A DNA stretch of 64,000 bases from Penicillus capitatus (taxonomy: Eukaryota; Plantae; Chlorophyta), in NCBI GenBank assembly GCA_965649825.1, contig OZ287696.1, positions 2,263,724 to 2,327,723 of the forward strand, in the 5' to 3' direction. Position 1 is the stretch's first letter; the number at the start of each line of letters is the position of its first letter. The notes beneath the pieces were generated by a model that saw only the letters and a program-made list of their open reading frames with translations, made no database searches and had not been told where the DNA came from. Below are positions 13,248 to 39,924 of this stretch, piece by piece. A program made the position numbers and the translations under genes.

Positions 13248-13281
13248 ATCTATCGAACAACAACGGCAATCCCATCCACGC

Positions 13282-14079: not shown

Positions 14080-14187
14080 CGTTCCTTACGACAGAACGTC
14101 ACATCCTTTGGTTTTCTACCCTCCGTGCTAGACCACCCCGTGACTCAGCGTTTCGTTTAGTGCCGTATCGTTCGCGTTGTGTCCCTG

Positions 14188-17672: not shown

Positions 17673-18309
17673 TCAAGATCGAAAACTGTTCCCTCGTCGC
17701 GCACGATTGAGGTAATCGTTGAGCATCCACGAACAGAATTCGAAATCGAGTGAGGCACTCATCCGTTCCATTTCGTCCTCGATGATCTCCCATTGCTCGG
17801 CCGTGAGGTAACAGAGAGCAGAAGATGTGAAGGAGATGCCGTTCTCCATGAGTGTTCCTTCAGGATCAGATCCGGAACGGATGAGTGTTTGGAGTGCCCT
17901 CCATAAGAGAGGATCGACATTGGAGCATCGAAATGGATCGATGAATGGGATGTCGGCATCGCCAAGCGGCTGATCGAAAGCATCTCTCGTACGCCATCCC
18001 TCATCTCCATCTCACACAACTGACCCATCTCTTCAGACGACGCAGCGTTTTACCTGGATCATCCTCCATCCTTTCCATACACAGTGCTTCGTAGGCCAGG
18101 TTGACAAGCGAGGCCAATTCCGTTGTGTCGCTCGACGAGACATCTGGATGCACGTTCTTCATTTTCTGCACGTATGCGGACCGAATCTCTCTTCGCGTTG
18201 CGCCTCGATGCACATCGAGCAGTTGATAGGGACAGGTGTCATCCGGCAGAGCAGGCGTTCTGGTGCAGTTCCACCTTTTCAACGATCGCGTTGTGTGCCC
18301 CGCGAGCAT
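17673..18309 (-). CDS. DnaJ-domain protein, probably organelle-targeted, 1 intron
   Basis: J domain PYQLLDV...REIRSAY...HPD...VNLAYEAL; intron 18011-18053 restores the frame to stop 17673. Confidence 0.8.
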
Positions 18310-18364
18310 CAGAATGCCGGTGCGCGCACCGTGCTATCCCATTGCACAGACTTTGCGTTTCTGC

Positions 18365-19237
18365 ATGCAGGGTTCCATGCGGTATGTTCGCACGCTAGCC
18401 GCGGCGCCACCGGATCCGCCACGATCTCTAGAAGTCACCCGTCCAAAACGCTCAGCTTCGCGACGGCTTCTTCGCAAGAGTGACCTCGAAAACAAACTCC
18501 TTATCACGCGCACGACTGGCCGGCAATTCGGCACTGTTGGTGAAGCCTGGGTCGAGCCACGACGTCTCTACGTCCAATCCTTCGACGTCATCCAGAAGAA
18601 GACGCTGTCATTGTCCAGCGAGAAACGCGGCAGCGTTGCCCTTAAGTACATTCGCGAAGTGGGTGATGTGGTGCTGATCCATGACGATCGCGATTTCACG
18701 ACCAGCTTCCTTGAAGCCGATCGCCGTCAAATCATCATTCCTGGATTGAAGCTTGTCCAAGACAATGGCACCTCCATCGGCCGCTGCGTCGATTTCGTCT
18801 TCGATCCCCAAACCGGTCGCATTGTCAAGCTCATCTTCCATACCGTCAATCTCGCCTTCGCCAAGAGTGGATGGTTTGATCAGTACGCAGTTAATGTACA
18901 GGAGATCTCACGTATCGTCCTGCCGGAAAAAATGATCTATCTACGCAACGAAGCCTCGTGGAAGAAAGTCGGAGTGGGCGAGTATCAGTTCTTGGCAAAT
19001 CTCGTCCCATCTTTCGCCGAAGAAGCCGATGACGACATCCGTTTTCTCGAGCGATCCGATTTGCAATCTCAGTATCAGACATTGCTGGAAGAGAGCCGCC
19101 GTCAACAGGCTGCCTATTATGCGCGTTATGGTCAGTCGAGGCGTCCATCAGCTGCGCGGCGACCTCGCGAGGACGTGCGGATCGATGATTGGATAAAAAG
19201 AGAGGAACGTGAAGAGCAGCTCTTCATGCAAGAGTGA
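18365..19237 (+). CDS. Tandem PRC-barrel domain protein (cyanobacterial-like), intronless
   Basis: Two PRC-barrel-like repeats (LITRTTGRQFGTVGEAWVEP...IREVGDVVLI; LVQDNGTSIGRCVDFVFDPQTGRIVKL). Start codon uncertain (18314/18365/18377). Confidence 0.7.
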   Translation: MQGSMRYVRTLAAAPPDPPRSLEVTRPKRSASRRLLRKSDLENKLLITRTTGRQFGTVGEAWVEPRRLYVQSFDVIQKKTLSLSSEKRGSVALKYIREVGDVVLIHDDRDFTTSFLEADRRQIIIPGLKLVQDNGTSIGRCVDFVFDPQTGRIVKLIFHTVNLAFAKSGWFDQYAVNVQEISRIVLPEKMIYLRNEASWKKVGVGEYQFLANLVPSFAEEADDDIRFLERSDLQSQYQTLLEESRRQQAAYYARYGQSRRPSAARRPREDVRIDDWIKREEREEQLFMQE

Positions 19238-19304
19238 GATCATCATCGTCAGGGACACAGATGCGGAACCTTCTTGTTCAACATCACACATGGATAGAAG
19301 ATCT

Positions 19305-19553
19305 TCATTGCTGGTCGAGAATATCTCTCGGCGGTCCTTTGGCCAATTCTCCGCGCGTCGCTTCGATCTCTGCCACACGTGCTCTGGCGCGTGCGACGGC
19401 GCCGGACATGAAATAACCACCCCACGCACCGCCGGCTGTCCAAATGAGGTACTCCCACGGATAACGCGTTAGTGGAAGCTGACGTAGGGCATTGGTATAC
19501 ATCTGTGTCGTAAAGCCGAAAGCGGCACCAGTGAACACCCATCCCATCACCAT
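19305..19553 (-). CDS. NDUFC2: Complex I subunit NDUFC2/B14.5b (green-lineage type)
   Basis: TQMYTNALRQLPLTRYPWEY matches the plant motif TQMYSNALRKLPYMRHPWEH; 82 aa. Confidence 0.8.
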   Translation of the reverse strand: MVMGWVFTGAAFGFTTQMYTNALRQLPLTRYPWEYLIWTAGGAWGGYFMSGAVARARARVAEIEATRGELAKGPPRDILDQQ

Positions 19554-19751
19554 GTCGAACGCACGACTCGGAAGGGGACGGACGGAAATCGCTAGAGATG
19601 TGACGTCGGGTAACGACAGCGGCAGAATGAACACGGGTCTGATATGACTTAATAAACAGCAATCAGTGCCTAAGACGATACACATTTAACAGAATAGATG
19701 ACTGAAGAGGCTCGGTCGGTCTCTTTATTAAATCTCCACAGTATCTGTGGT

Positions 19752-21136
19752 TCAATTCTGAAGCTCGGTGACCAAGGCGCCCCATTCCTTGGCGCTCTGA
19801 CTGGCGAGTTGGGCTTGAGACAATGCAAAATCTCTTAACACGGCTGACATCTCAACGGAGCGTTCTTGCTGAAAACGGGCAATCTCTCGTGACATTTTTT
19901 CGACGATGGCCTCGTAGGCCGTCTGCATGTTCTTCATCCGTGTCTCTGCTGTCTCCACTTCGCGTTCTGCCTCCAGTACTTTATCGTGTTTGGTCCCCGG
20001 TGCGCTACGGAATTTGCTGAGCTTTGCTTTCTGACTCTCGTGACTCGCCTTTGCGGCATTATAAGCGGCCAGAGCTGCTGTACGATCGGCAATGACCGCC
20101 TTAACGCTCTTCATGGTGCGCGTAAACTCCTTCATCGGTGCTTCAAAGCCTTCCGTCAACATCTTGCAACTCTCACGCGTATGCGATGACAATTCACCTG
20201 ATTCACACACTCTTTGCTCAGACCGTTTCAAGGGGGAGACAGACATTACCTGTGTGCTTGCCCAATTCTGTAAACGCTTCCTGCACGCGACCGTCTTCGT
20301 ACTTTCCAAGTTTGTCTGCCGCTTGGCCGAATTCTCCCACCGCCAAACCCAATTCGTTCTGCTTCTTAATGAGTCGCGCCGATTGACGATGCGCCTCGCT
20401 CAGATGCGATTCCAGATGTCCCAAGTACTCCTTCATTTTCAAATACTCCGGATCTTCACGATCGTCTTCGGCACCACGATGCAAGAAACTCTGTGCCGTC
20501 GTCAGTGTCCCTTTGAAGAACTTGTTCAGCTTCGTGCCAGCTCCGCCCTCTTCTTGGTTCATCCGTGCCACCGACATCGCCCAAACATCTTCCGTTGCCT
20601 CCAGGAAGAGTTTGAGCTCTTCGGCCTCGGAAAGGGCATCGTGGGCACAGACACGATTGATAAAGACTTGGAGGGCCTTTCGTCTCGATTCGATGAACTC
20701 TGTTGACATCTGGTATTTCTGTACGGCGTTCTTCTCGGGCAGCGGAGGGATGATGACTCCCTTGTACTTCTCTCGAAGCTTATCGGCGAGCCATGAGAAA
20801 TCGCGGAAGCGGCGTACGACTTCGAATTCGCCATTCGAAAACGAAGGGAGTGTTGTTTTGGTGCGAACGCGATAGGAGACGTAAGCCCCAACACCTTCGC
20901 CCTGTTTCACCGGGTCCGATACGACCACTTCAAAGGACGACCCCTTGGATGACTACACAGCACGGCCGAACCGCAATAGCAAACGAACGCACACACATGT
21001 TAAGCGTTACCCCTTCCCCGACGACAGACTCGTAAGCGGGCGGTGGACCGGGTGGAACAACACTTGGGCCCTGAGCAAAAGAAAAGACGACGTTGAGAGC
21101 ACGTCGTGGATGGCGGCGCACTTTGGATTCGGTCAT
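19752..21136 (-). CDS. SNX1: Sorting nexin 1 (PX-BAR)
   Basis: PX motif VVRRFRDFSWL...IIPPLPEK...FIESRRKALQVFINRV followed by a BAR coiled coil ending MSREIARFQQER. Confidence 0.92.
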
Positions 21137-21303
21137 GGTATTCGATGCGTCAAAGAGCGGCGCGCGTCGCGTGTTTGGTGAAAAATGCAGGAAGTACTAA
21201 ATGCAAAAATGAATGGATGCATCGTCACTTGGTATCGTTAACGCCATTTCTAGCTCGCGGCTTTTGGCGCCGACCCTGGTTACCAAACGTCATCGTCCGA
21301 GCC

Positions 21304-22625
21304 ATGGGAACAGTACCGCCTACTGAAACAGTGTCGCATCAGAGTGGCGACGCCCCCGAGAGCACAGACTTTGCCAACTACTTCTGCACCTATGCCTTCC
21401 TCTATCACCAAGTATGACTTGAATCACACATTGGCAAAGTGTGAGGAGTGAGTTTCTGTAGAAAGATATGCTGGAAGATCGCAAGAGAACGGGAAGCTAC
21501 TATGAAGCTGTCATGAAGAATGCGCATCTCTTTGAGGGACGCGTGGTGCTGGATGTTGGCACAGGCAGTGGCATTCTGGCCTTGTTTGCAGCTAAGGCGG
21601 GTGCCAGCAAAGTCTACGCCATCGAAGCGACAGATGTCGCTGTCCATGCTCGGACATTGATGCAAGCCAATAAGGCAGGATGGATGGTCAGATATCCATG
21701 CCGTTTCTCACCAGCTTCTTGTCTCAGGTCGCCGATCGCGTTGTCGTGATTCAGGGGACAATGGAATCGGTGGAATTGCCAGAGAAAGTCGATGTGATTA
21801 TTTCGGAATGGATGGGATACTTTCTTTTGAGGGAATCCATGATCGATTCGGTCATCGTGGCTCGGGACAAATTCCTTAAACCTGGCGGATCACTCTTTCC
21901 CAGTCATGCCAGCATGTATCTTGCGCCCATTCGCTCACAAGCAACCTACCTCCGCCTTCAGGAGTTCCAGGTGGTGCTAGTATCCGTCCGTCTTTGTGAT
22001 GAGGGAGATGGTGAGCATAGGGAGCAATGGCGGGATGGCATGCATTTGTGAGAGACATGCAGGAGTTCTATGGAGTGAATATGCACTGTCTGACCAAACA
22101 GTATGACAGAGAACAGCACGATTACTATCGATGTACGGCTCAGTGGAGTGAAGTGCATCCACATCAACTCATGGCGCCTCCTGTTCGATTCAAGAGCTAC
22201 GACATGCTGACAGTGACACTCGATGAAGCTAAAGTATCACACTTTCTCACACATGTGAGATCTGGAGATATGGATGTGTGCAGGCGCCATTGACGGCCGA
22301 GATGGAGTTTGAGATGCAATACGATGGCAAAGTGGATGCACTGTGTGGATTCTTTGATGTGACGTTTGCCGGTTCCCCTCAGAACCCGGCACAGCGTACA
22401 GTGCTGCTATCGACAGCTCCAGAGATGGATTCTTGCACACATTGGGGACAGCTGTCTTTTCATCTCTTCCCGCAGCTGCTGTGTCGAAGAGGTCATCTTC
22501 TGCCTCTGTCCGTGAAGATGACACGCAGAAGTGACAATCATCGATTGATGAATCTGCACGTTTCCATTCAGGATCCTCAGCAAAACAATGGGAAGGCATT
22601 GGAGTACGATTTCTTCATTGAATAA
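21304..22625 (+). CDS. PRMT10: Protein arginine N-methyltransferase 10, 4 introns
   Basis: DFANYFCTYAFLYHQ|KDMLED, VVLDVGTGSGIL, SEWMGYFLLRESM, THWGQ; GC-AG intron 21675-21727. Confidence 0.93.
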
Positions 22626-22747
22626 GACAGCCGCCTATTGAGTGGACCTCGCATGTGAATCGTATCGTGCGAAAATCGGATCAGCAAAAAGCAAACGCAG
22701 AAGTGTAATTGGAAACGGTCGGATGAAGCATCTTTGCAAATAGCACG

Positions 22748-24077
22748 TTATTTCTCTTCTCTCGTTCGATGGCGAAGCCCAGCTCTTGCTAAAGACACAT
22801 CAGACAGTGAGAAGATCCGTTTGCCGTGATAAAACGCTGTGCCATCACATTTTGCGGAAGCGGATGGTGATCCAGCCATCGGATGAGATCCTCTTCCAGA
22901 AACGGATTCTGCTCGAGGCGGTGTTTTGCTTGACGCCGCCCTCTTCGTTTCTTCCCCTGCCAGCCAACCAGCAGACTTGTACAAAATCAATGCAACGACC
23001 ACAGAAGCAAAAACAAGCATCATCCCACTCATCATCCACAGAAACGATATCGAATCCGAGGGACGCAGGAGATAGAGCCATTGATCCAGCAGACCTTCCA
23101 ACACACAGCGATACATCACAGGGAGGAGGGGTCTGTACGGAATACCTAGGTGTTTCGTCAAAGAGATGGCGGCGGCATAGATCTTTGGAAGATGTCCAGT
23201 GTATCTGGGAGTCAGCGTCATCTCAATGCTTTCCAGTGGCGCCGTCTCGTCTTCTCTGTAATGCTCAATGAGGACAATCTCAACCATCACGCGATTCTGG
23301 AAACGCATCAGCAGTCGTGCTGGAAACTTCCACAGCCTGATATCACAAACTGCCCTCATTGCTCAAGATCATGCATGACATTCCATTTTTATCACTTAGA
23401 CAAAAAATGCGAGTAATCGTGTACAGGTTGTCCGGTGACAGCGACGAAAGATTCGTGAAGTTTGGCTCCCCCTTCCGATCGTAGCACCGTTTGCGCATGA
23501 AAGACTTCAGGATCTTTATCTTCCTTTTCGAGCGTCAGTTGCAGAATGATGTCTACCTGTAGACACAGGAAATTGATTTGGTGTCGTGCAAAAGGAGAGG
23601 TACGTCATCTCCTGAATGGAAATAGCGCCGAGGACGATCTTCCTGTTGGATGCTTGGCAAAGATGTGATGTCTGACAGTCTGAGATGCATGGTCGCATGC
23701 TCTGTTCGAGTATCGAATGTGACGGGAGTTTTCACAGACGTCCATGACGGACTCCATCTCCTGTTTCAGCATTTGACGTCACGTCAGGGCGAGGATTGGA
23801 TATACCGAACACCCGTAACGGATGTCAGAATAAGAACACCCCAAGTGGCAGAAAAGAGACAAGGAATCAATGCAGTATAGGCACAGCAGACGGCACAGTT
23901 CTGCAAAAGACGACGGAACATTGGCTCGTTTTTAGTTGCGTGAATAAGCGGGATAAACCAGAGATCTTTTTGCTGATCAGGTTCATTCAAGTCGTGTACC
24001 GATAGCTTGACGTCGATGACGAAACGGTTTTTTGATGGAACGACGTCATGTCTTATCATTACGGCATAGACGACCAT
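22748..24077 (-). CDS. Hypothetical membrane protein, multi-exon; 5' structure uncertain
   Basis: ORFs 23784-24110, 23553-23735 and 22748-23359 join through short GT-AG introns; hydrophobic segments near both ends. No family recognised. Confidence 0.55.
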
Positions 24078-24437
24078 TCGTGGCCAAGGAGTTTGGACTG
24101 AATGGCACATTTATCTCTCTTGTGCAAGGATTTCCCAAGCAGTCAGCCCTGCATCCGACGCCCAGTCGCGTTCGTTGGAACGTGGTGCATTTCTGCCGTA
24201 GGTGTCACATCAGATGCGTCGCAGTGATCCAGACAGCCCTGCGAAATCGAGGCGGAAGTCCGCCGCGGCGCCACAAATGTACCACCGTGGAGCGTGTTTC
24301 GCTGCAATGTCGGCGACGCAGGATCGAAGACCGGTATCGCTCATCCTTGGTCCATGACTGTCCCTCGTAGCCCTCGAGCAGAGACGTAGGTCGCCAGCAG
24401 GGTGCCGAGACAGAGGGTCGTCAGTCGGGGACCAACG

Positions 24438-24621
24438 TGTCACTCGTGTCAATGGACAGCTGTCCACTTTCGTGCAGCTGACCGCGGAGACGCGTCGATG
24501 TGACGCGTGTGTACGTTCTACGCGTATAAATCCGAACATTAAACGACACAACAGTCTTTGTAACCTGTAAACCTTCGTCGTTACTTTGTCGTTAACCGCG
24601 TGGTTCATCGACAGCGTGACA
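24438..24621. mobile_element. Possible solo-LTR/MITE-like piece inside the copy-A-specific insertion
   Basis: 184 bp bounded by TGTCAC...GTGACA with internal TATAAAT and ATTAAA; absent from copy B; no target-site duplication found. Confidence 0.3.
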
Positions 24622-26772
24622 ACTCGTCGCTTCCGTCGTTGACGCGCCGCCCACCTCACTACACGGACACGGCCTCGCTGGCGACGGGACCGCATTCGCA
24701 ATTTTTGAAGGCGTTTTACGCCACCCCCGAACTCGGCTGAAAGCACGCGGAAGTTTCGGAGTTGGGCCCTCCGATCTGTCTCATGTCGCGTAATCCCAGC
24801 GCTTGGGCCAGCGTCGCAAACGATGAGGCTGCACCGAGCGAGACGCGACCGCTGCCTGTCGGCCAAGTTGCTCTCACGGCGACTCCCCGACGTCTCCCTC
24901 GTCTTCCTGCCATTCGTCCGTGACGACTTTCTTGACGACTCTTTGCGAGTCTGACGGACCGAGGCATGCTGTTCTTTGACGTTTCTTGACAAGACGACGT
25001 TTTCTTGCCCATTCATTGCAGGTTTTGTGGCAAGTGCACGTGGTAGACTGGTGTTATTCAACCGTTTTCCCTTAATTGCCTCACTCACTCTCAGCGTGTC
25101 GTGGTACTGTGTAAATACTTAACTATCACACAGCACATGTCTCTGACGAACTTCGACACCCTTCATTCTTAGTTGACACAGTCTTTCTTCCTGATGGGAC
25201 GTGGTGCAGATTCTTTCCGACCGCATTTTTTGGCCGACTTCAGCTTACTCCGTTACCTTCTGGTTCGCGGGCAGTCCGTAGCGGAAAGCGGTTCTCTGAC
25301 GTCGAAGAAGGCGGCCGACGGTCAGAGTGAAGGCTTGCAGGAATGTTTGTGCGTGCGGGTGGAGATGGCTGACGACGAAACTGTATCGAGGCGAGAAAGG
25401 CAACATTTAACTAAAGTCGTCAAACGAAATCGGTTAAGAGAGATTCCCGCGGGGCTAGGAGAGGTCCTTACTCCTGGCGTCGGAGAAAAAATACAGCAAT
25501 CGTCTACGCACGGAGGCAGTCGGAAGTTATTCTCGTCCAGACCCGTCCTTATGTCGGTCTGGTTAGAAGAGTGTTTTCCGGCGGTTTTTACAAAATCGGC
25601 TGCCCGAACTTCTTGGATGTTTTTTTTTCCATTTCCCCTGACGGGGCGTGGCACATGTTCATTCAAACGCCATGTAAATGAGGAATTATATATATTCTCA
25701 GTTGACACAGACGTGGTCGTCGCTTGTAAGATCTTTCATCTTTGAATTCCTAAATCCTTTACCCACAAGTATCCCTGCTTCTATATTCATGGATCCCTAT
25801 CTGTCCACTGGTCGGTGTGAAACTTGGAGGCCGCTATAGTACTTAGAACATCGCTCTGTTTGTATCGACAAACCCCGTCTTTTTTATAACTCTTTCATTT
25901 CAAGAACATAGTCTCTCGCGCCGGCCGATGCAAAAGTGAGTTATGTCTCGAAACTTAAAGTCAGTCTGTAACACAACATACTTCTCTTCCCATTTTGAAG
26001 GTTCGGAGACGAAAATCGAATCTCTATTCCGATTTATATCTAGACCATCATCATTTTGGCCCATGTGGCACATTTAGATACTCCTCGCCTGTGATACTCA
26101 GCGACCTTTCCGATGCTCTTGTTCGACCTCCGACAGTTTCGCTCTTCTATGAAGCAATGGCAGTTGAACCGCTGCTGCTTGCGAGGCTGCAATCCAAGAT
26201 TGCTTCCCCGATGGCATCTGACGTGCAACGAATCCTTCGTTGAGCACCGATCGCATTCTGCTTGCTCGTTTCGTACAATGGACAAGGTACATACTGCAAA
26301 GCATTTCAGGCTGCCGTTGGACAACACGAAGGGTCCAAATGGCAGTCCAAGGCTCCAGCATGTTCTCATAGTTGTCCGACGAAACGATCAATCCTTGAGT
26401 CGACGGTAAGTATCAGACGGATTCAATTTAAACATATCCGCGGCACCAATTTTAGAACCATCCGTTTTCTTTATTCATCTCGATATACAGAGAGCATTTA
26501 GCATGCGTCGACGACACCAGATATTTGTTCAGGTACTGATGATGAATACGGGTGTGTCCAGCTAATAAACTGCCACTCCGCTTCACTCGGAGCCTCTACG
26601 CGGAAACTACATACAGATAAACAGACACGTCTCATTTAACCAATGCATGGACATTTAAATCGTGCATCCGCCGGGCGAACGCACGTAACGCATTTTCTCC
26701 TCCGTTTATTCGCTGCCTGTCTGTGCTTCTGACGTGTCGTAGTTCTCGACCATCCACATTTTTCTCCACACA

Positions 26773-27109
26773 ATGCCTCGTTGCGAAACACGTTGCAGAT
26801 GCGCCATCGGTCTTTGCGGTCTGGACTGCCCATGCCAATTACATTGTCTGTGCAAAACTGGTTCTCCTACGGAAATCTACAACGGCCCGTGCGGCTGTGG
26901 CCACTGCGACAAATCGTGCGCTGCTTGTAACAGAACGTCCGAGGAATTTCGTCGCAAAACCATGCTTGGACGTGTCAGAGGAGGAATTGTCCTTGCCTCA
27001 ATATTCGCAGGCACCACCTTCGTGGTCATCCGCAGAAGAATGAACCGCGCACAAGTAACCACGACGAGCATTTTTTCAAACACAAATTCTTATTCCATAG
27101 GCTGCCTGA
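26773..27109 (+). CDS. Cys-rich (metallothionein/CXC-like) tail-anchored mini-protein, 96 aa, copy A
   Basis: 13 Cys in CxC clusters, one C-terminal hydrophobic helix flanked by Arg/Lys; 46-nt GT-AG intron 27055-27100 then GCT GCC TGA, mirrored in copy B. Confidence 0.75.
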
Positions 27110-27833
27110 GTCGCTCGTCGAAAGAAATTTTCCGCAGCCGTAGATATCGCAGAGTACAAAGGAATCGATGGTGTGGTTTACTACGACCTCGATGTTTTTG
27201 TCGGTCGGCGTGGAGGGCTGAGCGAAAGCACTGCCGGCCATCGCATCTTCCGTACACGCATTTTCACCTAGGCCTTGTATGATAGAAGAGAGTTAGAAGT
27301 TTAGGCCGCTGCGGGCGCTACAGTTGTTGCTACATTATGAAATGAATTGCGTACAAACAACGTTTACCAACACCACGGCCTCGCTCGCTTAGGGAGAAAA
27401 GTTGCGGCCGGCTCGCGTCTTACCTCAACGTGGCACGAGAGGACACCGAGGCAGAGGCAGTCGCTGATGCACTCTGAGCACAGTCGAATATTCCAGATGC
27501 GCAGGCACGTCGGCTGATACAGGGAAAAAAGAACATGTGGCATGCAGACAGGGTGAATGCGTTGTTGGGCTTGGTAGAGTGGTTCTTCCTCGCTCGCCCG
27601 AAGATTTTTGTCTCGTGGCTACAGCGCGACGCGAACGACTCGTGAACTGCTGCTGCATGAGAAATGCGCCGAGTGGACCGTCGATGTCCGCGGAAGCTGC
27701 TGAGAACCCAACATCGCATGACCCATCAGGTTGCGACGTGGAGATGCCGATTAAGTCACCTCTTTCCCGAGGTGGGCAAAATCCACCGCGCGCTGGGCGA
27801 GAAGCATAGTAGGGAATACTTACCCAGATTCTG

Positions 27834-28576
27834 ATGGCCTGTCATCACGTCGAGTAGAATCTAAAAGTGTCGCCGCCGGATGGCTCGGCACCCTACATGC
27901 CCCTCAGCGAGATTCGGTCGAATGACAGACAGCAGGAAGCATACTGCCGGGTCCTGTCTCAGTAGAACGAGCTCTACGCAGAATGTCGCCGCATGAGAAC
28001 GCAGGTCACACAGGCTCTTGTCCTACACGAGCAGTGCTCCGTGGAGTGGGACGACCCCTCTGTGTCCTCGAAACAGGAGCTGTTTCGCCGCAGGGAGAAA
28101 GCTGCCAAGGAGCGCACCGGCAAGGCAGGTTCAGGAGGGAAGCACAGACTCCAGGATCCGCCTCCGAAGGAGGTGGAGTTTGTGAATCCGGACTTGGAGG
28201 AGTACCTCCTGGCATCGCTCGAGTCGATGCACAAGAGACTCATCCCAGACTGCAGAGTCTGATCTCCGCTGCGATGCACGTCCACGTTAAGAGCTTGTCG
28301 GATCCAGACTCCCGGCAGCGCCACGCCGTGAAGCGCCTTGCCATCGACCAGAGAAACGACATCACGAGACTGGGCATCGCTCCCAAGCGACTGGCGCGAG
28401 ACGGCAGTGGAGCGAAGAGGTACAGAGCCGTCGAAGCGACGACCGGGGTCTCGTCCTCCACGAAGGATGCTGGATGCCGTTCGTCGAGCGTCCCTTCGAA
28501 GATGAGGAGGCGTCAGGATGGGAGACGACTGCCGACCACGTCCTGCGTCGTCTGCCGAAAACGACTTTCGATCTGA
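27834..28576 (+). pseudogene. Orphan ORF disrupted by in-frame TAG stops (copy A)
   Basis: Homologous to 62723-63488; each copy has stops where the other has sense codons; possible 35-nt intron near 28256-28290. Confidence 0.5.
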
Positions 28577-28675
28577 GCGAAGCAGAGGCGAAGCAGACGA
28601 TGCTCTCGGACAGATGACGACGGCCAAAATGACTTACTCACTCGATTGTTCTACGACGTCGACGGCGCCATTCTC

Positions 28676-29633
28676 ATGAAACGTGTGGCCCTTCGGCTTT
28701 CATCCGACGTGCGACGCCTGACCTCTGCGCGATCCCGAGACCTCGCCAAGCGGCGTCGACGGCCGCTCTCGTGTCCCCCGGTCTTCCCGAAGGACGGATC
28801 CCCCGAAGAGACGACTCTGCTCTCGGTGCGGCTCCGTGCCCGAGCTGGAGTTCGCCAGAGGGACTGCGGCGCGTGACGACTACGACGCCATCTGCGTTCT
28901 CGGAGGCGGCCACTCGGCCGACGGAACGCATCCGCCCTGGGTCTCGCGGCGACTCGAACTCGCCCGACGTCTCCTCGAGCGCCAGGCCGGTCCCGCCGTC
29001 CTCCTGTGCGTCGGTAAGCGATTCCCTTCGGACGTCTCCTTCGGAGGTATTTGTGCAGGGGGAGGAACACCGCACAGGCCGCCGCTGTGCGACGAGCACG
29101 GCTACGCGGTCCATGAGGCGACGCTGCTCGCGGCGGACCTGATCTCGCAGGGCGTCGATGCCCGACGACTCCTAAAGGAGTATGCCTCCTACGACACCAT
29201 CGGCAACGCCTACTTCACAATGACGTCCCACGCCATCCCTGCGAAGTGGTCTCGCGTGGCCGTCGTCACCAGCGAGTCCCACATGCCGAGGTCGAGAGCT
29301 CTCTACACCGACATCTTCAGCCTGGGGAGCGCTCACCTGCCAGATTCGTACCGTCCTGCGATCACCCGATCTCCTGCCGATCTCCTGCAACCTAGGTTCC
29401 TGCTGGAGTTCTTCGCGGCCTCGGACGAAGGCGCCCTGTCTCCTGAGGTGCTGGAAGCGCGGCGCGCGCGGGAGGCGGCGAGTCTCGCCGAGTGGAAGCA
29501 GAACTTCGCGAAGATCGAATGCCTGGCAGACTTCCACCTCTGGCTCTACGCCACCCACAGGTGCTACGCCGTGGCTCGGCAGCACGAGTTCGCATTCTCT
29601 GACATCGGCGACCTCGATCGACTGACCTATTAA
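28676..29633 (+). CDS. DUF218 (YdcF/ElyC-like) domain protein; 5' end unresolved
   Basis: DAICVLGGG, GGGTPHRPP, EYASYDTIGNAYF, VVTSESHMPRS motifs; 45-nt GT-AG intron after LLCVG. Confidence 0.82.
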
Positions 29634-29643
29634 ACAAGTTGTG

Positions 29644-31012
29644 TTAAAGGCGAAACTCTTTCGACTGGACAGGTTCGTTTCCCGATCCCCGTCGCCACGT
29701 TCCCGGCATTTGGTCCTCGTCCGTCGCGTCCATCCTCCACTGCTCGTTGAACAGGACGGTCGACAGATACCGTTCGCCGAAGCTCGGAAGAACGACGACG
29801 ATCAGCTTGTCCCGGTTCTCCGAGCGCAGCCCGACGCGCAGGGCGGCCTCGACGGCGGCGCCGGACGAGATGCCTGCCAGGATCCCCTCCTCCGTCGCCA
29901 GTCTCCGCGCCATGGCGATCGCTTCCTTGCTCGACACCTTGATCACCTCGTCGATCAGGTCCCTCCTGAGGACCTTCGGAACGAATCCCGCGCCGATGCC
30001 CTGGATCTGGTGGTAGCCTGGCCGGCCGCCGGACAGGACGGCGCTCTCGGTCGGTTCGACGGCGATGAGCTGTATCCCCGGGTTCTGTTCGCGCAGGAAC
30101 TGTCCGGCTCCGGTGATCGTCCCTCCGGTCCCGACGCCCGCCACCAGAATGTCGATGGCACCGTTCGTGTCGTGCCAGATCTCCGGCCCCGTCGTCTCGT
30201 AGTGCGCCTGAGGATTAGCCGGGTTCTCGAACTGCTGCAGCATGTAGGCTGAGGGCAGCTGCCTTCGGATCTCCTCTGCCTTCTGGATGGCCCCTCTCAT
30301 TCCCTAAGGCACCACACCCTGTCCGACCCGCCGAGCGCGGCCGGTTCACCTGCGATCCGTCCGTCAAGACAAGTCTGGCGCCGAACCCCTTCAGCAGAAC
30401 GCGCCGTTCCGTGCTCATCGTGTCCGGCATCGTCAGGACCAGATCGTACCCCAGAGTGGAGGCAACGAAGGCCAAACCCACTCCGGTGTTGCCGCTCGTC
30501 GGTTCCACCTACTCCACAGATTCTCCACCCAAAAAACGGCTGCGAGGTGGCTCGCACGAGTGTCGTGACTCCCGGCTTGATCCATCCTCTCCTCTCCGCG
30601 TCACGGACCATGCTCAGCGCGATCCGATCCTTCACACTGGCCACCGCAGCCACGACATCACTTTGCAGAATCGCGTTAGGGCTCGTGCCTCTTGCAGGGT
30701 TCCATGGTCTCGAGCTTGGCGGCGATCTGCGCGAAGCTGGTCCTTACCACGCGGTTCAAGAACACCTAGCAATCGTCGGCTGCCGGTCCGTGCGAACGGA
30801 AGTCATACCGTCGGCGTGTCCCCTATGGTGGCGCACACGTCGGCGGAAAGCTTTGCGCTGCCGTTGCGTTTGATGTCGGCCGCGAGCCCACCGTCTGCTT
30901 CGCTCTGGCCTCCGATCTCCATCCTCGGCCGCAGACGCGCGCGTCGAGTACTGTGTCCAGCTTTGTGACTCGAAACTTTCGGTGAACCTTTCCACGGAAG
31001 GACAGTCCGCAT
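29644..31012 (-). CDS. cysK: Cysteine synthase / O-acetylserine(thiol)lyase, transit-peptide-like N-terminus, 4 introns
   Basis: IGDTPTV|[13 protein letters not shown]|SVKDRIA (PLP lysine), [47 protein letters not shown]. Confidence 0.95.
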
Positions 31013-31095: not shown

Positions 31096-32750
31096 CTAAT
31101 TCACCTCTTTGATCAGCGTCAGAGTCTTGCCCTGGTCCCAAAACGGAAAGTCCTTCTTCTCCTGTTGCAGCTTGAACGTCTTTACCTCACTAATCGTGGC
31201 TCCTTCACGGGCTAACTCCATCTGCCTAGCCGCATTCTCCCTATAGCGCTGGCTATAGGGATGGCACTCGACGGAGAGGGCCCCCTTGCGCTCGTCGGAG
31301 TTGAGGTTTCTCACCAGATTCGACAGCTTCTTCCAAGCACGCTCCGTCCTGATCTTTGCGATAGGGTAGTACACCAGGCGATAATAACGACCCACGTCGA
31401 CGTTCTTAATGGAGAGTGGCTTGAACATTCGACAGTATCTGGAAGAGACTCGGCAGGAGTATGAAGATGGGCAAAGACTGACCTGTTCACCCGAATATGC
31501 AGTTTGCGCTCCCTGACAGTCCACCTCAGCCAGTCTCCGTCCTCTTCAATGTCTCCGCCCCCGAAGATTGCCTTCATGTGTTCCAGGAGAGATCTGTCGT
31601 CTGACAGCAGCCAGAACTTAAGCTGGATGCGGAAGTACGGGAAGGTGCCGGACTCGACTAATCGTCCAGCGAAGAGTCCATAGCTGCTGTCGATCCAACC
31701 CATGAGCCACTTGTTATTGAGTTGGGGCCTCCACTGGCACGTCTCCTTGAAAACAAATCCCTCGTCCTGCCAGACGCCCAGGTCCTTGTAGCGCTGCACC
31801 CATTCCCTGAAGGTGTCCCTGGACCGTTGGAGGAAGAGATTGCCATTGAGCAGATGGATGATACACGGTAGGTGCTTGTCGTCTTTCACGTAGAAGATCT
31901 CTTTGGTGTCGTCGGCGTGGCCGAAGTGTAGAAGGGAGCGGATCTTTCTGAAGAACTGTTTGTCTGAATGGTGCAGCGCGAAGTAGGGACGCCCGTTAGG
32001 GCCGACCTTGAATGGGAGCTGTGCCTCCGTGATGCCAATGAACCACTCAGCGAAGTGCGTATCCAGATGGTCTTTGTTGTCGGGTTGGACTTGGTGAAAG
32101 GCCTCAAGGCTGGGACGGGACAACGGCAGACTTAGCGGATCGTTGCTCCGATCTGGACGAGGTGGTCTAGGCGACCCGTGTCTCAGTTCCAAGTCCTCCA
32201 GGGACCCTACACTCTCTTTCTCGCTCTCTTCGAGCTTCACTAGCTGAGAGTCCGTGATTTCCATCTTCTCGGTTTCTTTGTCGACTCCGTCAGCTTTCCT
32301 GAGCTGGTGTACAATCGAGCGGACCATCCGATCGGACGATGGATCGCAGTGGGAGAACGGCAGAACTTTGAAATTCGCGAGCCGTTTTGTTCTCTCCGGT
32401 GTCTCCCTGTGCATCCTTCGCAGCCGCTTGGCATCTCTTTTCGTTGCCTTGTGCTTACGGACGAGGTCGACCGCGAGGACGCTCTCTTCCGGCGAGTGCG
32501 TTCTCCGATAGACTCGCTGCCGGATTTCTTCTTCATCTGCCTCGACGTCCTTTGCCTGATTCTTCACCTCCAACTTCTTCGCGTAGCCGTAAAAACGCTC
32601 GTCTGCGTCTTTGGGTCCATCGTCTGCTTGACGCGCGCGACCTCGCGCGAAGGAACGTGAAGTCGTTGCCGTCTTCGTTGCTAGTCGATCCCGCAGACCG
32701 CTGCCGACATTCCATCCCGTGAAGTCGAGGAGACGGCAACTCCTGTGCAT
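31096..32750 (-). CDS. Nuclear-encoded double-motif LAGLIDADG protein with N-terminal extension and one spliceosomal intron
   Basis: Motif 1 FAEWFIGITEAQLPF...IRSLLHFG...IHLLNGNLFL; motif 2 KWLMGWIDSSYGLF; a 44-nt GT-AG intron near 31439-31482 joins ORF 31311-32750 to 31096-31438. Confidence 0.8.
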
Positions 32751-34872: not shown

Positions 34873-36340
34873 GTTCTTAAGGACCACAGGCGCTTCATCT
34901 ATCACAATAACACAACACCGGTCAGGCTTGAGCTATGCGCGAACTTTTAAGTTGTGTTGACTGCAGAGAGTCACGGTTTTTGTAAGTAGAGGAAATGTGC
35001 AGATAGGTGTTCAGTCGGTGCAAATAGTGTGGACCGAGAAGACTATTATCGATCTGGAAATCACACAAATGGTCGACAGACGGCCACTTCCCGAAGAGAA
35101 TGTGCAGGGAACCAACCTAACCTGTATCGTCACTCAATCGTGTGTGCGTAAAACAAACCAATCGTCAAACGCGCGTAAAGCATGAGTTTATGTGAAACAT
35201 AAAGAATACCATTACATACCATCCGTTCGGTTCGATTTATGCGCATCGGACTCATCTTGACCGAATAACAAGCCAGAAAAAATTAATCCGACTGAAAACG
35301 GCCAGTTCGATTTATGCGGATCGAACACATCTTGACATTGACAGAATAACAGCTCAGAGAAGCCTGGAATCTTGGATGATGAGGTGCACACAAAATCCAT
35401 TCCTTGCCCGAATACCTACCGAACGATAGCTTTAACCAATTCATGCCCGTCACGAACCCATGCAACCAGTCGCCTCATGAACACAACTTCTCTTCCGTTG
35501 CCGCTGGCAAACAAAACAATCGAAACCTTGTCTCGAATGGGCGCTTTTCAGTCTCGTCGGCATCCCAAACCAAACGGCACAAACCTGTTCTTTGGCGATC
35601 TAACCGTCCGACCACACTTCCGTTCCCGCATCTCCCAGACCAATTCCCAGCGCCTCGGCACTCGACCTACCGCCGCATGCAAACCCCGTGGAGCGTAATA
35701 CCATACACACCGTCTAGACTACCACTCTCCCGTGTGCAAACTAACGTCCTCCTCAAGCTGACTACGAAGCAAAGCTTCGTGGCGAAGCCGACGCAAGAAA
35801 TCCACGGACAATAGCTCTTTAGGAAAAAATCTACGCGAAACAGCCGAAGTATGCTTGCAATGGAAACGAAAAAAAACAAGGAAAAAACAACAAGCCTACG
35901 ATACCGAGAACGGAAAGACAGCGCTGGCGCGGGAAAGAAGAAACCACGTTGCCTACGCAGACACTCAAGAAAAGAAAAAAATCGCGTCGAGCAATGGCGA
36001 TCGCAGAACCCTAGGTCAGCACGGCGCAGTCAACGAAGGAACGTGGCCCCAGAGCCATCCTCGTTCCTTTGCCAAGATCATCCCACGCTCTCCGCTCCGC
36101 GCATTCATTTAGTCGTCGTGCTTTGGCCTCACCGCGTATTCGCCATTCGTGTTCGCTCTCTCGTCACACATCACCAAGTAACGCATTAGAGCGCCAATCT
36201 CGTATCCTGTTGTGCCGACCCTTGACATTGGCTTCTCTCCTCACCCGCCCATCTTGACAAAGTTGCGCCTTCCGCACGAACAGGCCCGATACAACCTCCG
36301 ACAAAACCTAATCCGCACGCCAGACCGCTTCAGCGGTCAT

Positions 36341-37354
36341 TTATCTTCTGGATCTCTTCCGAGAGCTTCTAGGTGAACTCCCCGCTCCAATGTCGACTTT
36401 CCGTTTTGGATCTTCCGTTCCTCTTAACCTCGCCAGCCGTTCTTCCTGAGACCCCGTGTTGCGAAGATTATCAGAACGCCTCGCATCTCTTTCTCTTGAC
36501 ACTTCTTCTTCGTACGTCAAGGCCCGCGTACGACGTTTAGAACCGTTGCCATCGGACGCCATATCTTGTGTTTCCATAACGACGTCTCCATCTTCGTCGA
36601 CAGCAAAAACTTCCGCGGGCGGCTCGGCGTCGTCCGCTTCTTCCGCGGGCGGCTCGGCGTCGTCCGCTTCTTCCGCGGGCGGCTCGGCGTCGTCCGCTTC
36701 TTCCGCGGGCGGCTCGGCGTCGTCCGCTTCTTCCGCGGGCGGCTCGGCGTCGTCCGCTTCTTCCGCGGGCGGCTCGGCGTCGTCCGCTTCTTCCGCGGGC
36801 GGCTCGGCGTCGTCCGCTTCTTCCGCGGGCGGCTCGGCGTCGTCCGCTTCTTCCGCGGGCGGCTCGGCGTCGTCCGCTTCTTCCGCGGGCGGTTGCGCCT
36901 CGGCGGCCTCGTTTAGGATGAAGTTGACGAAGGCAATGGCGAGTGCGCGTCGTCGTCGACGGACCACTCCCACACGGGCGTTAAGCTCTAACCTCATGTT
37001 TCTTACGAACATCGCAATTCTGAAAACCGTAAAATCGTCGTTGTGGGCGTTCATGTTGGTCACCAAAGCATTCCTCAACCTTGTCGCAAAGTCAGCCCAC
37101 GTGTACGGCAACGCGTCTTCACCTCCACCAAAACCCCCGGTCACATGACGCGGACACATCTCTGCACTAACGGATATGAGTGCGAATATGTTATCCGGCC
37201 CGTTTCCGTTATAGTACGATTTTAATAGACGACAAGAGTAGGCTACATGGGCGTCGAAGAAAATACCGTATCTTTCCTCATCGACGGCTTCTTGGCGCAA
37301 CCCGCTCATGGTGTGGTCTGTCAATATCTGAGCAACGAAGGCAAACGAACTCAT
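36341..37354 (-). CDS. Intronless orphan protein, left-arm paralog, with 9x PPAEEADDAE and basic C-terminus
   Basis: 337-aa open frame, alignable over its full length with 38189-38857 (ILTDHT, FATxLRNAL, FRIAMF, LTYEEExSRER). Confidence 0.75.
   Translation of the reverse strand: MSSFAFVAQILTDHTMSGLRQEAVDEERYGIFFDAHVAYSCRLLKSYYNGNGPDNIFALISVSAEMCPRHVTGGFGGGEDALPYTWADFATRLRNALVTNMNAHNDDFTVFRIAMFVRNMRLELNARVGVVRRRRRALAIAFVNFILNEAAEAQPPAEEADDAEPPAEEADDAEPPAEEADDAEPPAEEADDAEPPAEEADDAEPPAEEADDAEPPAEEADDAEPPAEEADDAEPPAEEADDAEPPAEVFAVDEDGDVVMETQDMASDGNGSKRRTRALTYEEEVSRERDARRSDNLRNTGSQEERLARLRGTEDPKRKVDIGAGSSPRSSRKRSRR
36611..36892. repeat. Perfect 30-bp tandem repeat, 9 full copies plus a partial
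   Basis: Unit TTCCGCGGGCGGCTCGGCGTCGTCCGCTTC at 36611, 36641 ... 36851 with no mismatches. Confidence 0.98.
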
Positions 37355-37432
37355 CGTGGTCGTGTTTCCTAGAAAGTTTGAAAACTTGACGCCAAAAGCT
37401 ATCGTGCAAGGGAAGTTTAATGAGAAGTGGCG

Positions 37433-38094
37433 AAAACCCTAATACGCGACAAAACCCTAACGCACGACGTCTTTTATACTCGCAAAATGGACTAATAGAA
37501 GATTTAATGGAAATCTGCGGTTAACTTAAAAAACTCTTATGGCGATTGGCTGATTCGACGACACTGTGATGGGACGTCTGCCTATTAATGTCAGCACATG
37601 CGGCAAAATCGACTGAGCCAGAAGCTTAGGTAGCTAACGCCTCAACCAAGAGGTCAGCTGGTGTTGTGTTTAGCCGTAACGCCCATGATAATGCGCTCAT
37701 CTACCTACACTTGTGTCGATCTCCAGGTGACAGGTCGTAGGTTCTCTATACCTTCCCATCCACAAATAGACCCGCGGCTCTACGTCACAGATTCCAAGCA
37801 GATTCCGGAATCTTCGAAGAATATTCCTCTTTGTTACTTAAAATAAAGTACCCTATAAAAGCGTTGTAGCTGTACAGATCTTGTCTTTCGTTTGCAAGAC
37901 TTTACGTTTTAAAAGGTCTACGTGCGCCCACCGTTCAAATTGTTTCATCTAAAACCCTACGCGACAACGGCCGACATCTAACCGTAGGACAGGAACGTCC
38001 AATCGCACTGTCGTCGAATCAGCCAATCCCACGAGAGTACAAAACCTAATTTTAGACATCAATAGTATATTAGGCACTTACGCAATAGGGTTTT
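37433..38094. promoter_or_regulatory. Divergent promoter region with mirrored CCAAT-containing motif and telo-box-like AAAACCCTA motifs
   Basis: GATTGGCTGATTCGACGACA-x-TG-x-GAT-x-GGACGT at 37544-37577 and its inverted copy at 37995-38028; AAAACCCTA at 37433, 37451, 37951 and inverted near 38086. Confidence 0.5.
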
Positions 38095-38188
38095 GTTACG
38101 TGTTTGGGTTTTGTGAATCCTCCGTAGAGTTCTCCTTAGGCAATACCTGTTGGCGTCGAGTTTCCATATCTTTCGAAACATTATCACG

Positions 38189-38857
38189 ATGAGTTTGTTT
38201 GCTTTGGTAATTCGGATTTTGACAGACCACACCCTGACAACGTTGGGCCAAGAAGTCATTGAACGGGAAAAGTACTGTGTTTTCTTCTACGACTTTGCAG
38301 TCTATTCTTCTGATATTTTGCGGACGCACGACAACCTAAACGTGCCAAGTAATATGAGCGCGCCCCTGTTCGTAAGTACAGAGATGCATCCGAGTAATGT
38401 GGCTTGGGGTTACGGAAGATGTGGAGAAGCGTTGACTCGTACGTGGGATCACTTTGCAACAGTCTTAAGGAATGCTTTGGCGACTATCATACACGCACAC
38501 ATTGACGAATTTGCAAATTTCAGAATTGCGATGTTCGCAAGATACATGTGGTCAGAGCTCAGCGCTCCTATCGAAGTGGTCCGCCGACGAGAGCGTATTA
38601 TCTCAACTGCCTTGGCAAACTTCATTATAAACGAAGCAATCGAGGCGCAGCCAACCGAGCCGGAGGAAGTGCATGTCCCTAAACGTCGTACGTGGTCCTT
38701 GACGTACGAAGAAGAATTGTCAAGAGAAAGAGAGGCGCGGCGTCACCATAATCTTCGGAACACGCGGGCTCGGGAAGAACGGCTGGCGAGGTTAAAAAAA
38801 GTGGGAGATTCAAAACAAAAGGTTAATAGTGGGGCAGGGAGTCAACCTAAGAGGTAA
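38189..38857 (+). CDS. Intronless orphan protein, right-arm paralog (~222 aa)
   Basis: Open frame starting MSLFALV, aligned with MSSFAFV of 36341-37354; lacks the acidic repeat. Confidence 0.72.
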   Translation: MSLFALVIRILTDHTLTTLGQEVIEREKYCVFFYDFAVYSSDILRTHDNLNVPSNMSAPLFVSTEMHPSNVAWGYGRCGEALTRTWDHFATVLRNALATIIHAHIDEFANFRIAMFARYMWSELSAPIEVVRRRERIISTALANFIINEAIEAQPTEPEEVHVPKRRTWSLTYEEELSREREARRHHNLRNTRAREERLARLKKVGDSKQKVNSGAGSQPKR

Positions 38858-39924
38858 CGTCGAAGTTGTCTGGTGCGTGGATTAGGATTTGCTGAAGGTT
38901 GGATCGGGCGCATTTGAGTGGAAGGCGAAGCTTTATTGCGACGGGCCGAAGCACGACGACCAAGGAATGCGAGCAGTGAAGAGCATGGGGTGATGATGGC
39001 AAAAAAGAACGATGATCAATGTGGGGCCACGTTCATTGCTTAAAGGCGGCGTGCTGACATAGAGTTCTACTATCTCCGTGGATCGACGCGAGTTTTTTGT
39101 GCGTCTTCGTAGGCAAAGTTTTTTTTTTTGTGTTTCCGTCGTTAAGCGCTCGTTTTTTTTTGCGGGTGTCATAAGCTCGTTGATTTTTCTCTCGTTTTTT
39201 GTTGCCTATGCAAACACACTTCGGGTGTTTTGCATGATTCTCTTTCTTCTAAAGAGCCGTAGTCCGTGGATGTTTTGTGTCGGTTGCGCCACGAAGCATT
39301 GCTTAGTAGTCAGCTTGAAGGAGACGTTGTGTTCTTGAGTCGAATGGCTGCTTGGGTTCGCGACGGGCATGCGTTGGATACGGGTATCATCAGGGATCCA
39401 TTCAAGGGCTTTGCATGTTCTCTATCCAAAAATTCACTGCTCGATGCCGTGGCTATTTCTCTGTCAAGACGAGTTCGTTCCGTATAAATCGAACTGGCTG
39501 GTTTTATTCGGATTTGTTGTTTTGGCCTGTTCTCTGTCAAGACGAGTTCGATCCGTATAAATCGAACCAAACCTGCGTATGTAATGGCATTTTCTATATT
39601 TCGCATAAGTTGTTATTCCACGCGCGTTGAAACGATTGGTTCTCTTTTGGGCAACACTCCTTAGATCATCTCCGATTCTGGTACGTGTATCATGTATAGC
39701 TTAGTTGACCACCCCGTGCGCCGCCCATGCAGTAAAAGAAGTCCGCTGTGTCAATAACAGAGTTTTACGTCCATCTCAGGAAACCGACCGTATGCGCTAT
39801 TCTGCCGGACACGACAGTATCTTTAAAGATGCAGTATCACAACTGCAGCCTCGTCTTGTCAAAAGAGGACATACATATCTCATGCTTGGCGAAGAATCGG
39901 CTGATGGCAGACTTGCGAATGCCA

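Follow-up and report, generated by a model that had tools for sequence, protein, structure and literature searches.

A head-to-head gene pair in a 4.5-kb palindrome of Penicillus capitatus: a probable inverted duplication within a rapidly diversifying family of gene cassettes

The part of the genome of the green alga Penicillus capitatus analysed here, 64,000 nucleotides of contig OZ287696.1 (assembly GCA_965649825.1, forward-strand positions 2,263,724 to 2,327,723) and referred to below as the window, contains an imperfect palindrome of 4.5 kb, the arms of which carry two paralogous genes. We consider the palindrome, with a probability of about 0.6, to have arisen when a single cassette of a family that evolves by birth and death was duplicated locally in inverted orientation; both reading frames would have been kept for the most part, with the left copy remaining complete and the right copy trimmed and perhaps dying. 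The event itself would be of an ordinary kind, an inverted gene duplication, that has acted on an unusual and undescribed gene cassette, and the main interest lies in the family to which the cassette belongs and in the conserved sequence that flanks its genes. Positions below are those of the window unless another locus is named.

When the left half was compared by blastn with the right half in reverse complement, the inverted repeat was located at 35140-39657, with edges no more than 25 bp from those given in a preliminary description made from the sequence alone (35165-39632). It consists of a left arm of 2,438 bp (35140-37577), a right arm of 1,663 bp (37995-39657) and a spacer of 417 bp, and seed-and-extend repeat finding recovered eight collinear inverted-repeat blocks across 35168-39628. 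Complementarity between the arms is 71-91% in gapless seeds, 71-87% in blastn blocks and 65-82% in segments aligned with MAFFT. Global alignment gave identities of 82% for the C-terminal coding sequence, 71% for the N-terminal coding sequence, 65% for the 5' leader, 75% and 71% for two blocks of the downstream region, and 73% for the end motif together with the short repeats; overall, the arms are approximately 27% diverged. The excess length of the left arm is made up of 250 bp (35493-35742), 118 bp (36129-36246), an array of 30-bp tandem repeats and 26 bp at the end of the open reading frame (ORF). The palindrome is also present in a contig (L001) from ENA sample ERZ25074695, which is 99.92% identical to positions 28200-48631, and its occurrence in this independent assembly, together with the divergence of the arms, rules out an assembly artefact. 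The two assemblies differ at six sites in 20.4 kb, comprising three substitutions, one 11-bp repeat unit and two single-base insertions or deletions (indels); both of these indels lie in the right arm, one being a frameshift in the right gene and the other falling in a T run of the right flank, and may represent either alleles or assembly errors.

Each arm contains one outward-reading ORF, as had been described previously, and the two start codons are 835 bp apart. The encoded proteins are, also as expected, about half identical, with 51% identity over 155 aa without gaps and 67% over 57 aa. The left gene (36341-37354, minus strand) encodes 337 aa and has the full architecture of the family as defined by alignment A3: an N-terminal domain (N-domain), acidic repeats, the motif VDEDGDVVMET and a basic C-terminal region with a final SRKRSRR. 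The acidic repeats correspond to a perfect 30-bp tandem repeat (36610-36892, minus strand; repeat family D1), present in 9.4 copies with 100% matches and a score of 566 in TRF, the units of which read PPAEEADDAE. The right gene (38189-38857, plus strand), delimited by its ORF, by protein comparison and by the same alignment, encodes 222 aa from its ATG, although the ORF opens at a TTG at 38150. It retains the N-domain and the C-terminal helices; the tandem repeat found in the left gene is absent, as are DEDGDVVMET and the SRKRSRR tail, the last lost via the 26-bp deletion at the end of the ORF. When compared with a hidden Markov model (HMM) built from other family members, the left gene scored 143 bits and the right gene 113 bits. 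The earlier statement that both frames are open is correct for the window but not for L001, in which one T is absent at window position 38502 and the right protein is consequently cut to 146 aa (P0001).

These genes had been regarded as orphans, and a word-seeded search did match the window's own two genes only. However, a full HMMER profile search of 1.84 billion representative sequences, using a profile of both window paralogues, detected 31 related protein clusters at E ≤ 1e-3, of which 24 remained at E ≤ 1e-10 and nine at E ≤ 1e-30; an orphan call may thus fail where the search is word-seeded only. A search of a 90%-clustered database with the A3 profile was dominated by acidic low-complexity candidates and returned five members. 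The common architecture begins with an N-domain of around 150 aa that has a nearly invariant TW and, frequently, the motif TWAD[FY]A..LR. This is followed by a linker of acidic tandem repeats, the unit of which is different in each member, then by DEDGDVVMET and a conserved basic C-terminal region (consensus KRR..LSYEEE..RE.EAKRRYNLR.TRAREERM..LK...D.KRK...GSSSK.SRKRSRR). Members share 15-48% amino acid identity in the N-domain and 39-68% in the C-terminal region, and approximately one fifth of the clusters are fragments. Two members, P0008 (363 aa) and P0009 (507 aa), are identical save for one residue and the copy number of a 12-aa acidic repeat (ADEQVAVVEDGV), indicating that the number of repeats varies between alleles or strains. 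At locus L010, a 91-bp unit in the acidic-repeat part of the family gene is duplicated at 99.5% identity (L010 7987-8268); the gene is present there as two overlapping ORFs (7175-8050 and 8001-8516) and is probably a frameshifted member.

The structure predicted for these proteins depends strongly on the depth of the alignment. With three sequences, AlphaFold gave a mean predicted local distance difference test score (pLDDT) of 53 for the whole model; with a 30-sequence alignment, AF2 modelled residues 1-150 of the left protein at a pLDDT of 92-98, save for one ten-residue block at 74, as a bundle of seven helices, with a disordered linker and C-terminal helices at around 80. This rise marks the N-domain as a real, co-evolving protein domain. 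Searches of Pfam with both window proteins and all 30 family members returned low-complexity noise only, and a PDB profile search had no match at E ≤ 1. The Foldseek comparison, which had been proposed for residues 1-150, was run with the full 336-residue model, the disordered linker of which lowers template modelling scores, and found no fold match in PDB (best E 0.5) or BFVD (best E 0.9). A bZIP-like nature of the C-terminal basic helix was ruled out, as inspection by eye showed a poor fit to the signature residues and there was no match in Pfam. No signal peptide, transmembrane segment or surface-protein feature was seen in the proteins, residues 2-19 forming the first helix of the predicted bundle. 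The nuclear localisation previously proposed on the basis of the basic C-termini is a reasonable suggestion where the family as a whole and the left protein are concerned, but not for the right copy, which is without the basic tail. The family proteins are probably nuclear, and their predicted build, in which a variable bundle of helices is connected through a disordered acidic segment to a basic SRKRSRR tail, suggests nuclear proteins whose binding surface changes quickly.

All twelve of the members looked up come from two ENA samples, ERZ25074695 and ERZ26696514. The contigs carrying family genes in the first of these mostly have 26-34x coverage, with three at 6x, 15x and 19x. A contig of the second is collinear with window positions 4957-24077, at 86.5% nucleotide identity over 19 kb, which points to the two samples holding closely related species or strains. 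Judged by these sequences, the proteins appear to constitute a lineage-specific multigene family, without a known domain, of a narrow lineage represented by two related metagenome-assembled genomes, probably of green algae. This is an uncharacterised and rapidly diversifying family, with at least 31 clusters and a confidently predicted but unmatched helical fold.

At the DNA level, for which approximately 12 of at least 31 family members were sampled, the genes are packaged as discrete cassettes of around 2.2-2.9 kb. A cassette has a promoter module, consisting of a CCAAT box with telo-boxes and/or a TATA element, one intronless ORF and, 3' of this, about 1.1 kb of conserved non-coding flank followed by a short array of 73-91-bp repeats. 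The left arm was split into pieces, each of which was searched against the fetched loci; the order of C-terminus, three flank pieces, short repeats and end block recurs in L002, L003 (for both of its genes), L005, L009, L010, L011 and L012, with some pieces missing from some copies. Cassettes are scattered over unrelated genomic contexts, and eight of the ten related loci read (L002-L006, L009-L012) have a solo cassette. A second head-to-head pair is found in L003, where genes at 1321-2151 (minus strand) and 6001-6954 (plus strand) lie 3.65 kb apart. Similarity between loci is limited to the cassette and a few short repeats, including a dispersed repeat of approximately 220 bp, which rules out the copying of the cassettes within a larger segmental duplication that took in, for example, the BTB genes near those of L010 and L012. 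These BTB_2-domain genes are situated a few kilobases from the cassettes (L010 2453-3784 and 11169-12492; L012 635-1530); the two in L010 are on either side of the cassette and share 72% identity, and L010 and L012 have no similarity to one another outside the cassette.

The two window genes bear the marks of selection principally in their reading frames. In the 636 aligned coding nucleotides there are no indels, as against 20 events in 972 non-coding nucleotides of the arms, where 13.1 would be expected in the coding sequence (P = 2e-6); the frame of both copies is clearly protected. Both ORFs stayed free of stop codons by chance in around 0.6-1% of simulations, and one lineage alone did so in 6-10%. 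Calculation of dN/dS between the paralogues, a check suggested in the preliminary description, gave 0.58 for the N-domain (dS 0.55, dN 0.32) and 0.69 for the C-terminus (dS 0.29, dN 0.20), with a pooled value of 0.61 that is below one at a one-sided p of 0.004. Identity is nearly flat across the codon positions (72/74/68% in the N-domain) and amino acid identity barely exceeds that of a neutral simulation, hence the substitutional constraint on the pair is weak. Across the family, the C-terminal region has dN/dS values of 0.15-0.6 in nearly all pairs (dS 0.35-2.5), which indicates purifying selection. Among family-conserved columns, the consensus is kept by the left copy alone at 14 and by the right copy alone at nine in the N-domain, and at six each in the C-domain; these near-equal losses imply that the deficit of the right copy results from deletions and not from faster substitution. 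The N-domains of the pair are the closest sampled relatives of one another, at 48% amino acid identity compared with no more than 41% for others, and the two genes have the lowest dS of all pairs. An inverted duplication with a gene under selection, as originally put forward, is therefore sustained in a weak form with respect to the coding sequences, but the 3' flanks of the two copies are not closest relatives.

The conserved 3' flank of the left gene extends over approximately 1.0 kb (35346-36340, minus strand), and that of the right gene (38858-39449, plus strand) is shorter by the 250 bp and 118 bp equivalent to left positions 35493-35742 and 36129-36246. Eight copies of the flank, from two genomes, can be aligned at 57-84% nucleotide identity. 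It contains an inward-facing ORF (35851-36189 on the left), which had been described as Lys/Arg-rich and decayed. ORFs of 112 and 79 aa are indeed present in the arms, and of 166-240 aa at the equivalent place in L003, L005 and L002; however, the eight-copy alignment has many indels in this region that are not multiples of three, and no codon periodicity was found in nine ungapped blocks (permutation p 0.07-1.0), thereby ruling out a gene. The strand is A-rich and T-poor (AT skew +0.26), hence stop codons are rare and those for Lys and Arg frequent. The region is consequently read as conserved non-coding DNA, and the contrast drawn earlier between a decayed neighbouring ORF and two maintained genes disappears. 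No Rfam match was obtained at gathering thresholds for the window or at E ≤ 1 for the palindrome, and a tRNA search found none.

The flank differs by 16-43% between cassettes, whereas the dS of the adjoining C-terminal coding sequence is mostly 0.6-2 in the same pairs. This conservation in excess of neighbouring synonymous sites, together with the differing histories of flank and coding sequence discussed below, points to functional constraint on the flank, as a long untranslated region or cis element, to exchange of flank sequence among copies, or to a combination of the two. In nearly every comparison the right flank shows the greatest divergence from the other copies (65-73% identity), which would fit a loss of flank constraint.

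Beyond the flank, each arm has the two regularly spaced short repeats that were recognised in the preliminary description. On the left these are spaced at 75 bp (35225-35345, minus strand; family D3) and each contains a 7-bp inverted repeat, GTTCGAT-N8-ATCGAAC; on the right they are spaced at 73 bp (39450-39572, plus strand; family D2) and have an identical inverted-repeat core. The 32-nt repeat core occurs four times in the window and not at all in shuffled sequences. Other cassettes have between one and four matches to the repeat, with a spacing of around 91 bp in L002. The stem is nearly constant and the loop varies, the hairpins, folded as DNA, have low stability (-2.4 to -5.5 kcal/mol), and no compensatory change was seen in the 7-bp stems, which hardly vary; a binding site for a dimeric protein would be as likely as a structural role.

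The outermost part of the palindrome is formed by the end blocks. The left one (35140-35224, minus strand; ...ACGCGCGTT/AACCAATCG) includes inverted repeat I7 and lies within a blastn match of 35140-35492 to 39657-39321; the right one (39577-39657, plus strand) was delimited by blastn and by alignment of cassette ends. The motif of 52 nt shared by the two arms at 75% identity is present as had been claimed, and the left end block also occurs in L002, L003, L010, L011 and L012. It does not, though, mark a terminus. Multiple alignment of cassette ends showed that the left arm, the L003 copy designated L003b, L010 and L002 retain their similarity over an additional 90-600 bp outside the palindrome, and the left cassette extends to at least 34927, with 34927-35281 matching L003 8694-8346 at 73%, such that 34927-35139 (minus strand) continues its 3' flank. 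For the right arm, resemblance to any of the other copies ends at around 39650. The edge of the palindrome thus appears to be the point at which the right copy is truncated rather than the terminus of a transposon.

At the inner edge of each arm is a 34-nt CCAAT-box motif (inverted repeat I9), at 37544-37577 on the minus strand (reverse complement ...GTCGTCGAATCAGCCAATC) and 37995-38028 on the plus strand, which corresponds to the shared promoter motif noted previously. It is 91% complementary between the arms, to which it is restricted within the window, is conserved in L002 and L011, and appears, wrongly translated, as extra N-terminal sequence in P0008, P0010 and P0015. The sequence CAGCCAATC lies approximately 150-220 bp upstream of each ATG. 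Counting of the telo-box-like motif AAAACCCTA found two occurrences in the left 5' leader (37433-37459, minus strand) and one in the right (38086-38094, plus strand); there are four in the window, all within the palindrome, compared with 0.16 expected. The core of the telo-box is AAACCCT (PMC3212954). Judged by their sequences, CAGCCAATC and AAAACCCTA would fit plant-type promoter elements, of the CCAAT/NF-Y type and the telo-box respectively. Plant telo-boxes mark translation-related genes, whereas the putative motifs described here mark a lineage-specific family.

The central spacer (37578-37994) includes, at 37661-37971, a TATA-box promoter element of the family (GTACCCTATAAAAGC), directed towards the right gene on the plus strand. 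This element is 92% identical to L010 6598-6909 and is found upstream of family genes in L005 (86%), L011 (93%) and L012 (80%), with a shorter match in L004 (77%). The right gene is therefore preceded by two promoter modules in tandem, the TATA element and then the CCAAT motif.

The course of events that we favour would begin with the local inverted duplication of one cassette, producing a head-to-head pair at a depth of divergence now measured as a dS of about 0.35-0.54. Weak purifying selection would then have acted on both coding regions during most of the subsequent period. A complete member of the family would have persisted on the left, and the right copy would have been trimmed of its linker, DEDGDVVMET, basic tail, 368 bp of flank and cassette end; other cassettes also have the segments by which the left arm is longer, which argues for deletions in the right arm. 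The product may be a short variant or a future pseudogene. The variable N-domain may be the part that confers specificity or binding, with the acidic linker and basic tail attached to it, and, as a last and speculative step, the pace of change could reflect some form of genetic conflict.

Several observations weigh against a simple duplication of this kind. The amino acid identity of the pair, at 55%, is close to the 52 ± 2% of the neutral simulation (p = 0.08). In the flank, the left arm shares 84% identity with L003b and 73% with the right arm, whereas in the N-domain the left protein shares 28% amino acid identity with L003b and 48% with the right protein. The histories of flank and coding sequence thus appear to be decoupled, for which duplication in situ would not be a sufficient account; part of the discrepancy can be put down to the right flank having decayed faster. 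In addition, no close orthologue of either window gene was returned from the sister genome, despite the 86.5% identity over 19 kb, and the arms are more diverged from one another than the two genomes are, a situation that would fit either loss in the sister genome or separate arrival of the cassettes.

Some of these observations are accommodated by an alternative that treats the cassette as an undescribed type of mobile or selfish element, with a single ORF and a 3' flank and repeats needed in cis, and the arms as two insertions or a composite. We regard this as unlikely, albeit with enough in its favour to be taken seriously. The cassettes are discrete units in unrelated contexts, similarity ending at their edges. 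The one pair of loci at which both boundaries were read, L002 and L011, has sharp limits at the 5' end (CACAT...) and the 3' end (...CACGCGAT), with the 5' edge around 20-25 nt upstream of the CCAAT box, and the inner edges of both window arms, read by eye from the printed sequence, are similarly placed approximately 17 nt beyond it. The ORF is intronless, in a region where neighbouring genes are apparently split into exons, the low divergence of the flank relative to the adjoining dS would be expected of a sequence needed in cis, and a unit that moves would be consistent with the decoupled histories, with the fragments that make up about a fifth of the clusters and with the failure to recover an orthologue of a pair whose arms are older than the species split. 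Set against this, no terminal inverted repeats, target site duplication, long terminal repeats (LTRs) or Helitron-type ends were seen at the L002/L011 boundaries, the 3' extents of cassettes vary from pair to pair, and Pfam revealed no transposase, reverse transcriptase, integrase, Rep or helicase domain, nor was there any fold match. No direct repeat was apparent by eye at 35140/39657, although at 27% divergence a short target site duplication may have been erased. Young, near-identical copies are likewise lacking in the ten 90%-identity clusters checked, each of which has one or two members; most old copies have intact ORFs, fitting selection at each locus; and the N-domains of the window pair are sisters. 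The preliminary description allowed that the module might prove to be a known transposable element family inserted twice: it is indeed a dispersed family, but not a known one. Specific classes can be set aside, in that a Helitron should have 5' TC and 3' CTRR ends and a Rep or helicase domain, none of which was found, and an LTR retrotransposon is ruled out by the flank pieces occurring only downstream of the gene, never upstream. A separate insertion is present in the cassette promoter region of L002, at the place of the L011 TATA element: an ORF (L002 4267-5941), flanked by 155-bp direct repeats, that combines a coiled coil with a CCHC zinc knuckle and by eye resembles Gag, but has no Pfam match. 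The dispersed repeat of about 220 bp associated with it also occurs in L005, L010, L011 and L012, and the probable identity of these sequences is a small element of LTR type together with solo LTRs derived from it.

That the cassette spreads selfishly without a recognisable transposase, by means of its own promoter, a cis-acting flank and the GTTCGAT-N8-ATCGAAC repeats, with the protein serving as a driver or a defence in a genetic conflict, is a proposal about which we are doubtful, although the conservation of the flank in excess of the adjoining synonymous sites does single out the family as a candidate case of genetic conflict or of mobile cassettes among green algae. It is improbable that no selection has acted and that both ORFs have stayed open by chance while an old inverted duplication decayed. 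The nearly flat codon positions, an amino acid identity merely three points above the neutral simulation, the 6-10% of simulations in which a single lineage remains open and the frameshift of the right copy in the other assembly would all be compatible with such a history, but it is disfavoured by the indel test, by a dN/dS below one and by the N-domains, which score 113-143 bits against the HMM of other members and have kept family-conserved residues about equally. Very improbable, in our judgement, is a selfish toxin-antidote or meiotic drive system resembling wtf or Spok, with the paralogues, or two transcripts of one of them, acting as poison and antidote. A fast-evolving, multi-copy family with variable in-frame repeats and conserved flanks would suit this, as would the tandem TATA and CCAAT modules of the right gene, which could provide two transcript starts; however, the toxin-antidote pair envisaged earlier is at odds with products that are paralogues of a single architecture, with the predominance of solo members and with a model that predicts an all-helical soluble bundle and disordered linker, lacking any transmembrane or toxin-like feature. 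The suggestion with least credence is that the palindrome is a source of hairpin RNA, giving rise to siRNAs that silence the family, as the small-RNA mapping proposed earlier implies. It is an inverted repeat of family genes, but arms that are 65-82% identical and carry large indels would pair poorly in a read-through transcript, the two genes are read outwards from a common promoter region such that normal transcription crosses one arm only, and ORFs free of indels would be needless in a pure RNA source.

The surroundings of the palindrome have a GC content of around 50%, with the exception of a GC-rich island at 28000-31000. A GC-rich (63%) segment forms a direct repeat, 28200-29100 and 63088-64000, at 94% identity and approximately 35 kb apart; the first copy adjoins an ORF with a DUF218 domain (28836-29633) and a PALP or cysteine-synthase-like ORF (29644-30300, minus strand). 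Just to the left of the palindrome is an intronless ORF of 479 aa (31311-32750, minus strand) with no Pfam match. The collinearity with the sister genome (L007), which is maintained at 86.5% up to 24077, breaks down into patches of 70-83% in 24077-27801, hence conservation between the two genomes falls off in the direction of the palindrome. A MEI2-like protein is also encoded in the window, the best named relatives of which are from trebouxiophyte green algae (Prototheca, Auxenochlorella, Micractinium and Botryococcus), followed by land plants, at 65-72% identity over the conserved C-terminal third, as would befit a green-algal source.

Comparison with known systems places the palindrome and the family in different categories. 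Foldback (FB) transposons, the type of element to which the palindrome was first compared, similarly have long inverted arms with short tandem sub-repeats near their outer ends; here, however, the sub-repeats number two per arm and are not terminal, the outer edge would represent the truncation of one copy, eight of ten related loci are solo, and no target site duplication was seen, hence this assignment is not upheld. Inverted segmental duplications with a bidirectional promoter region are closer, sharing head-to-head paralogues, collinear arms, a short unique spacer and sister N-domains. They differ in that the arms of the present palindrome are cassettes of a dispersed family, the flanks of which are not closest relatives, and that its spacer carries the promoter element of one arm only.

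The family itself invites other parallels. The wtf genes of fission yeast encode multi-pass membrane proteins from alternative starts and are located next to LTRs. Rapid divergence, high copy number, in-frame repeats of variable number, signs of exchange between copies and nearby repeats are common to both, but the protein described here is a predicted soluble helical bundle with an acidic linker. In variant multigene families, such as those of the trypanosome VSG with its 70-bp repeats, Plasmodium var and Giardia VSP, a hypervariable N-terminal domain is combined with a conserved C-terminus and 3' sequence and with flanking repeats. Unlike these, the present family has no surface-protein feature, its basic tail instead resembling a nuclear localisation signal, its repeats are downstream and not upstream, and its host is a green alga rather than a parasite. 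Nevertheless, it resembles them in having a hypervariable N-domain (15-48% amino acid identity) joined to a conserved C-terminus (39-68%), in the conservation of the 3' flank and adjacent repeats, and in the apparent decoupling of flank and coding histories.

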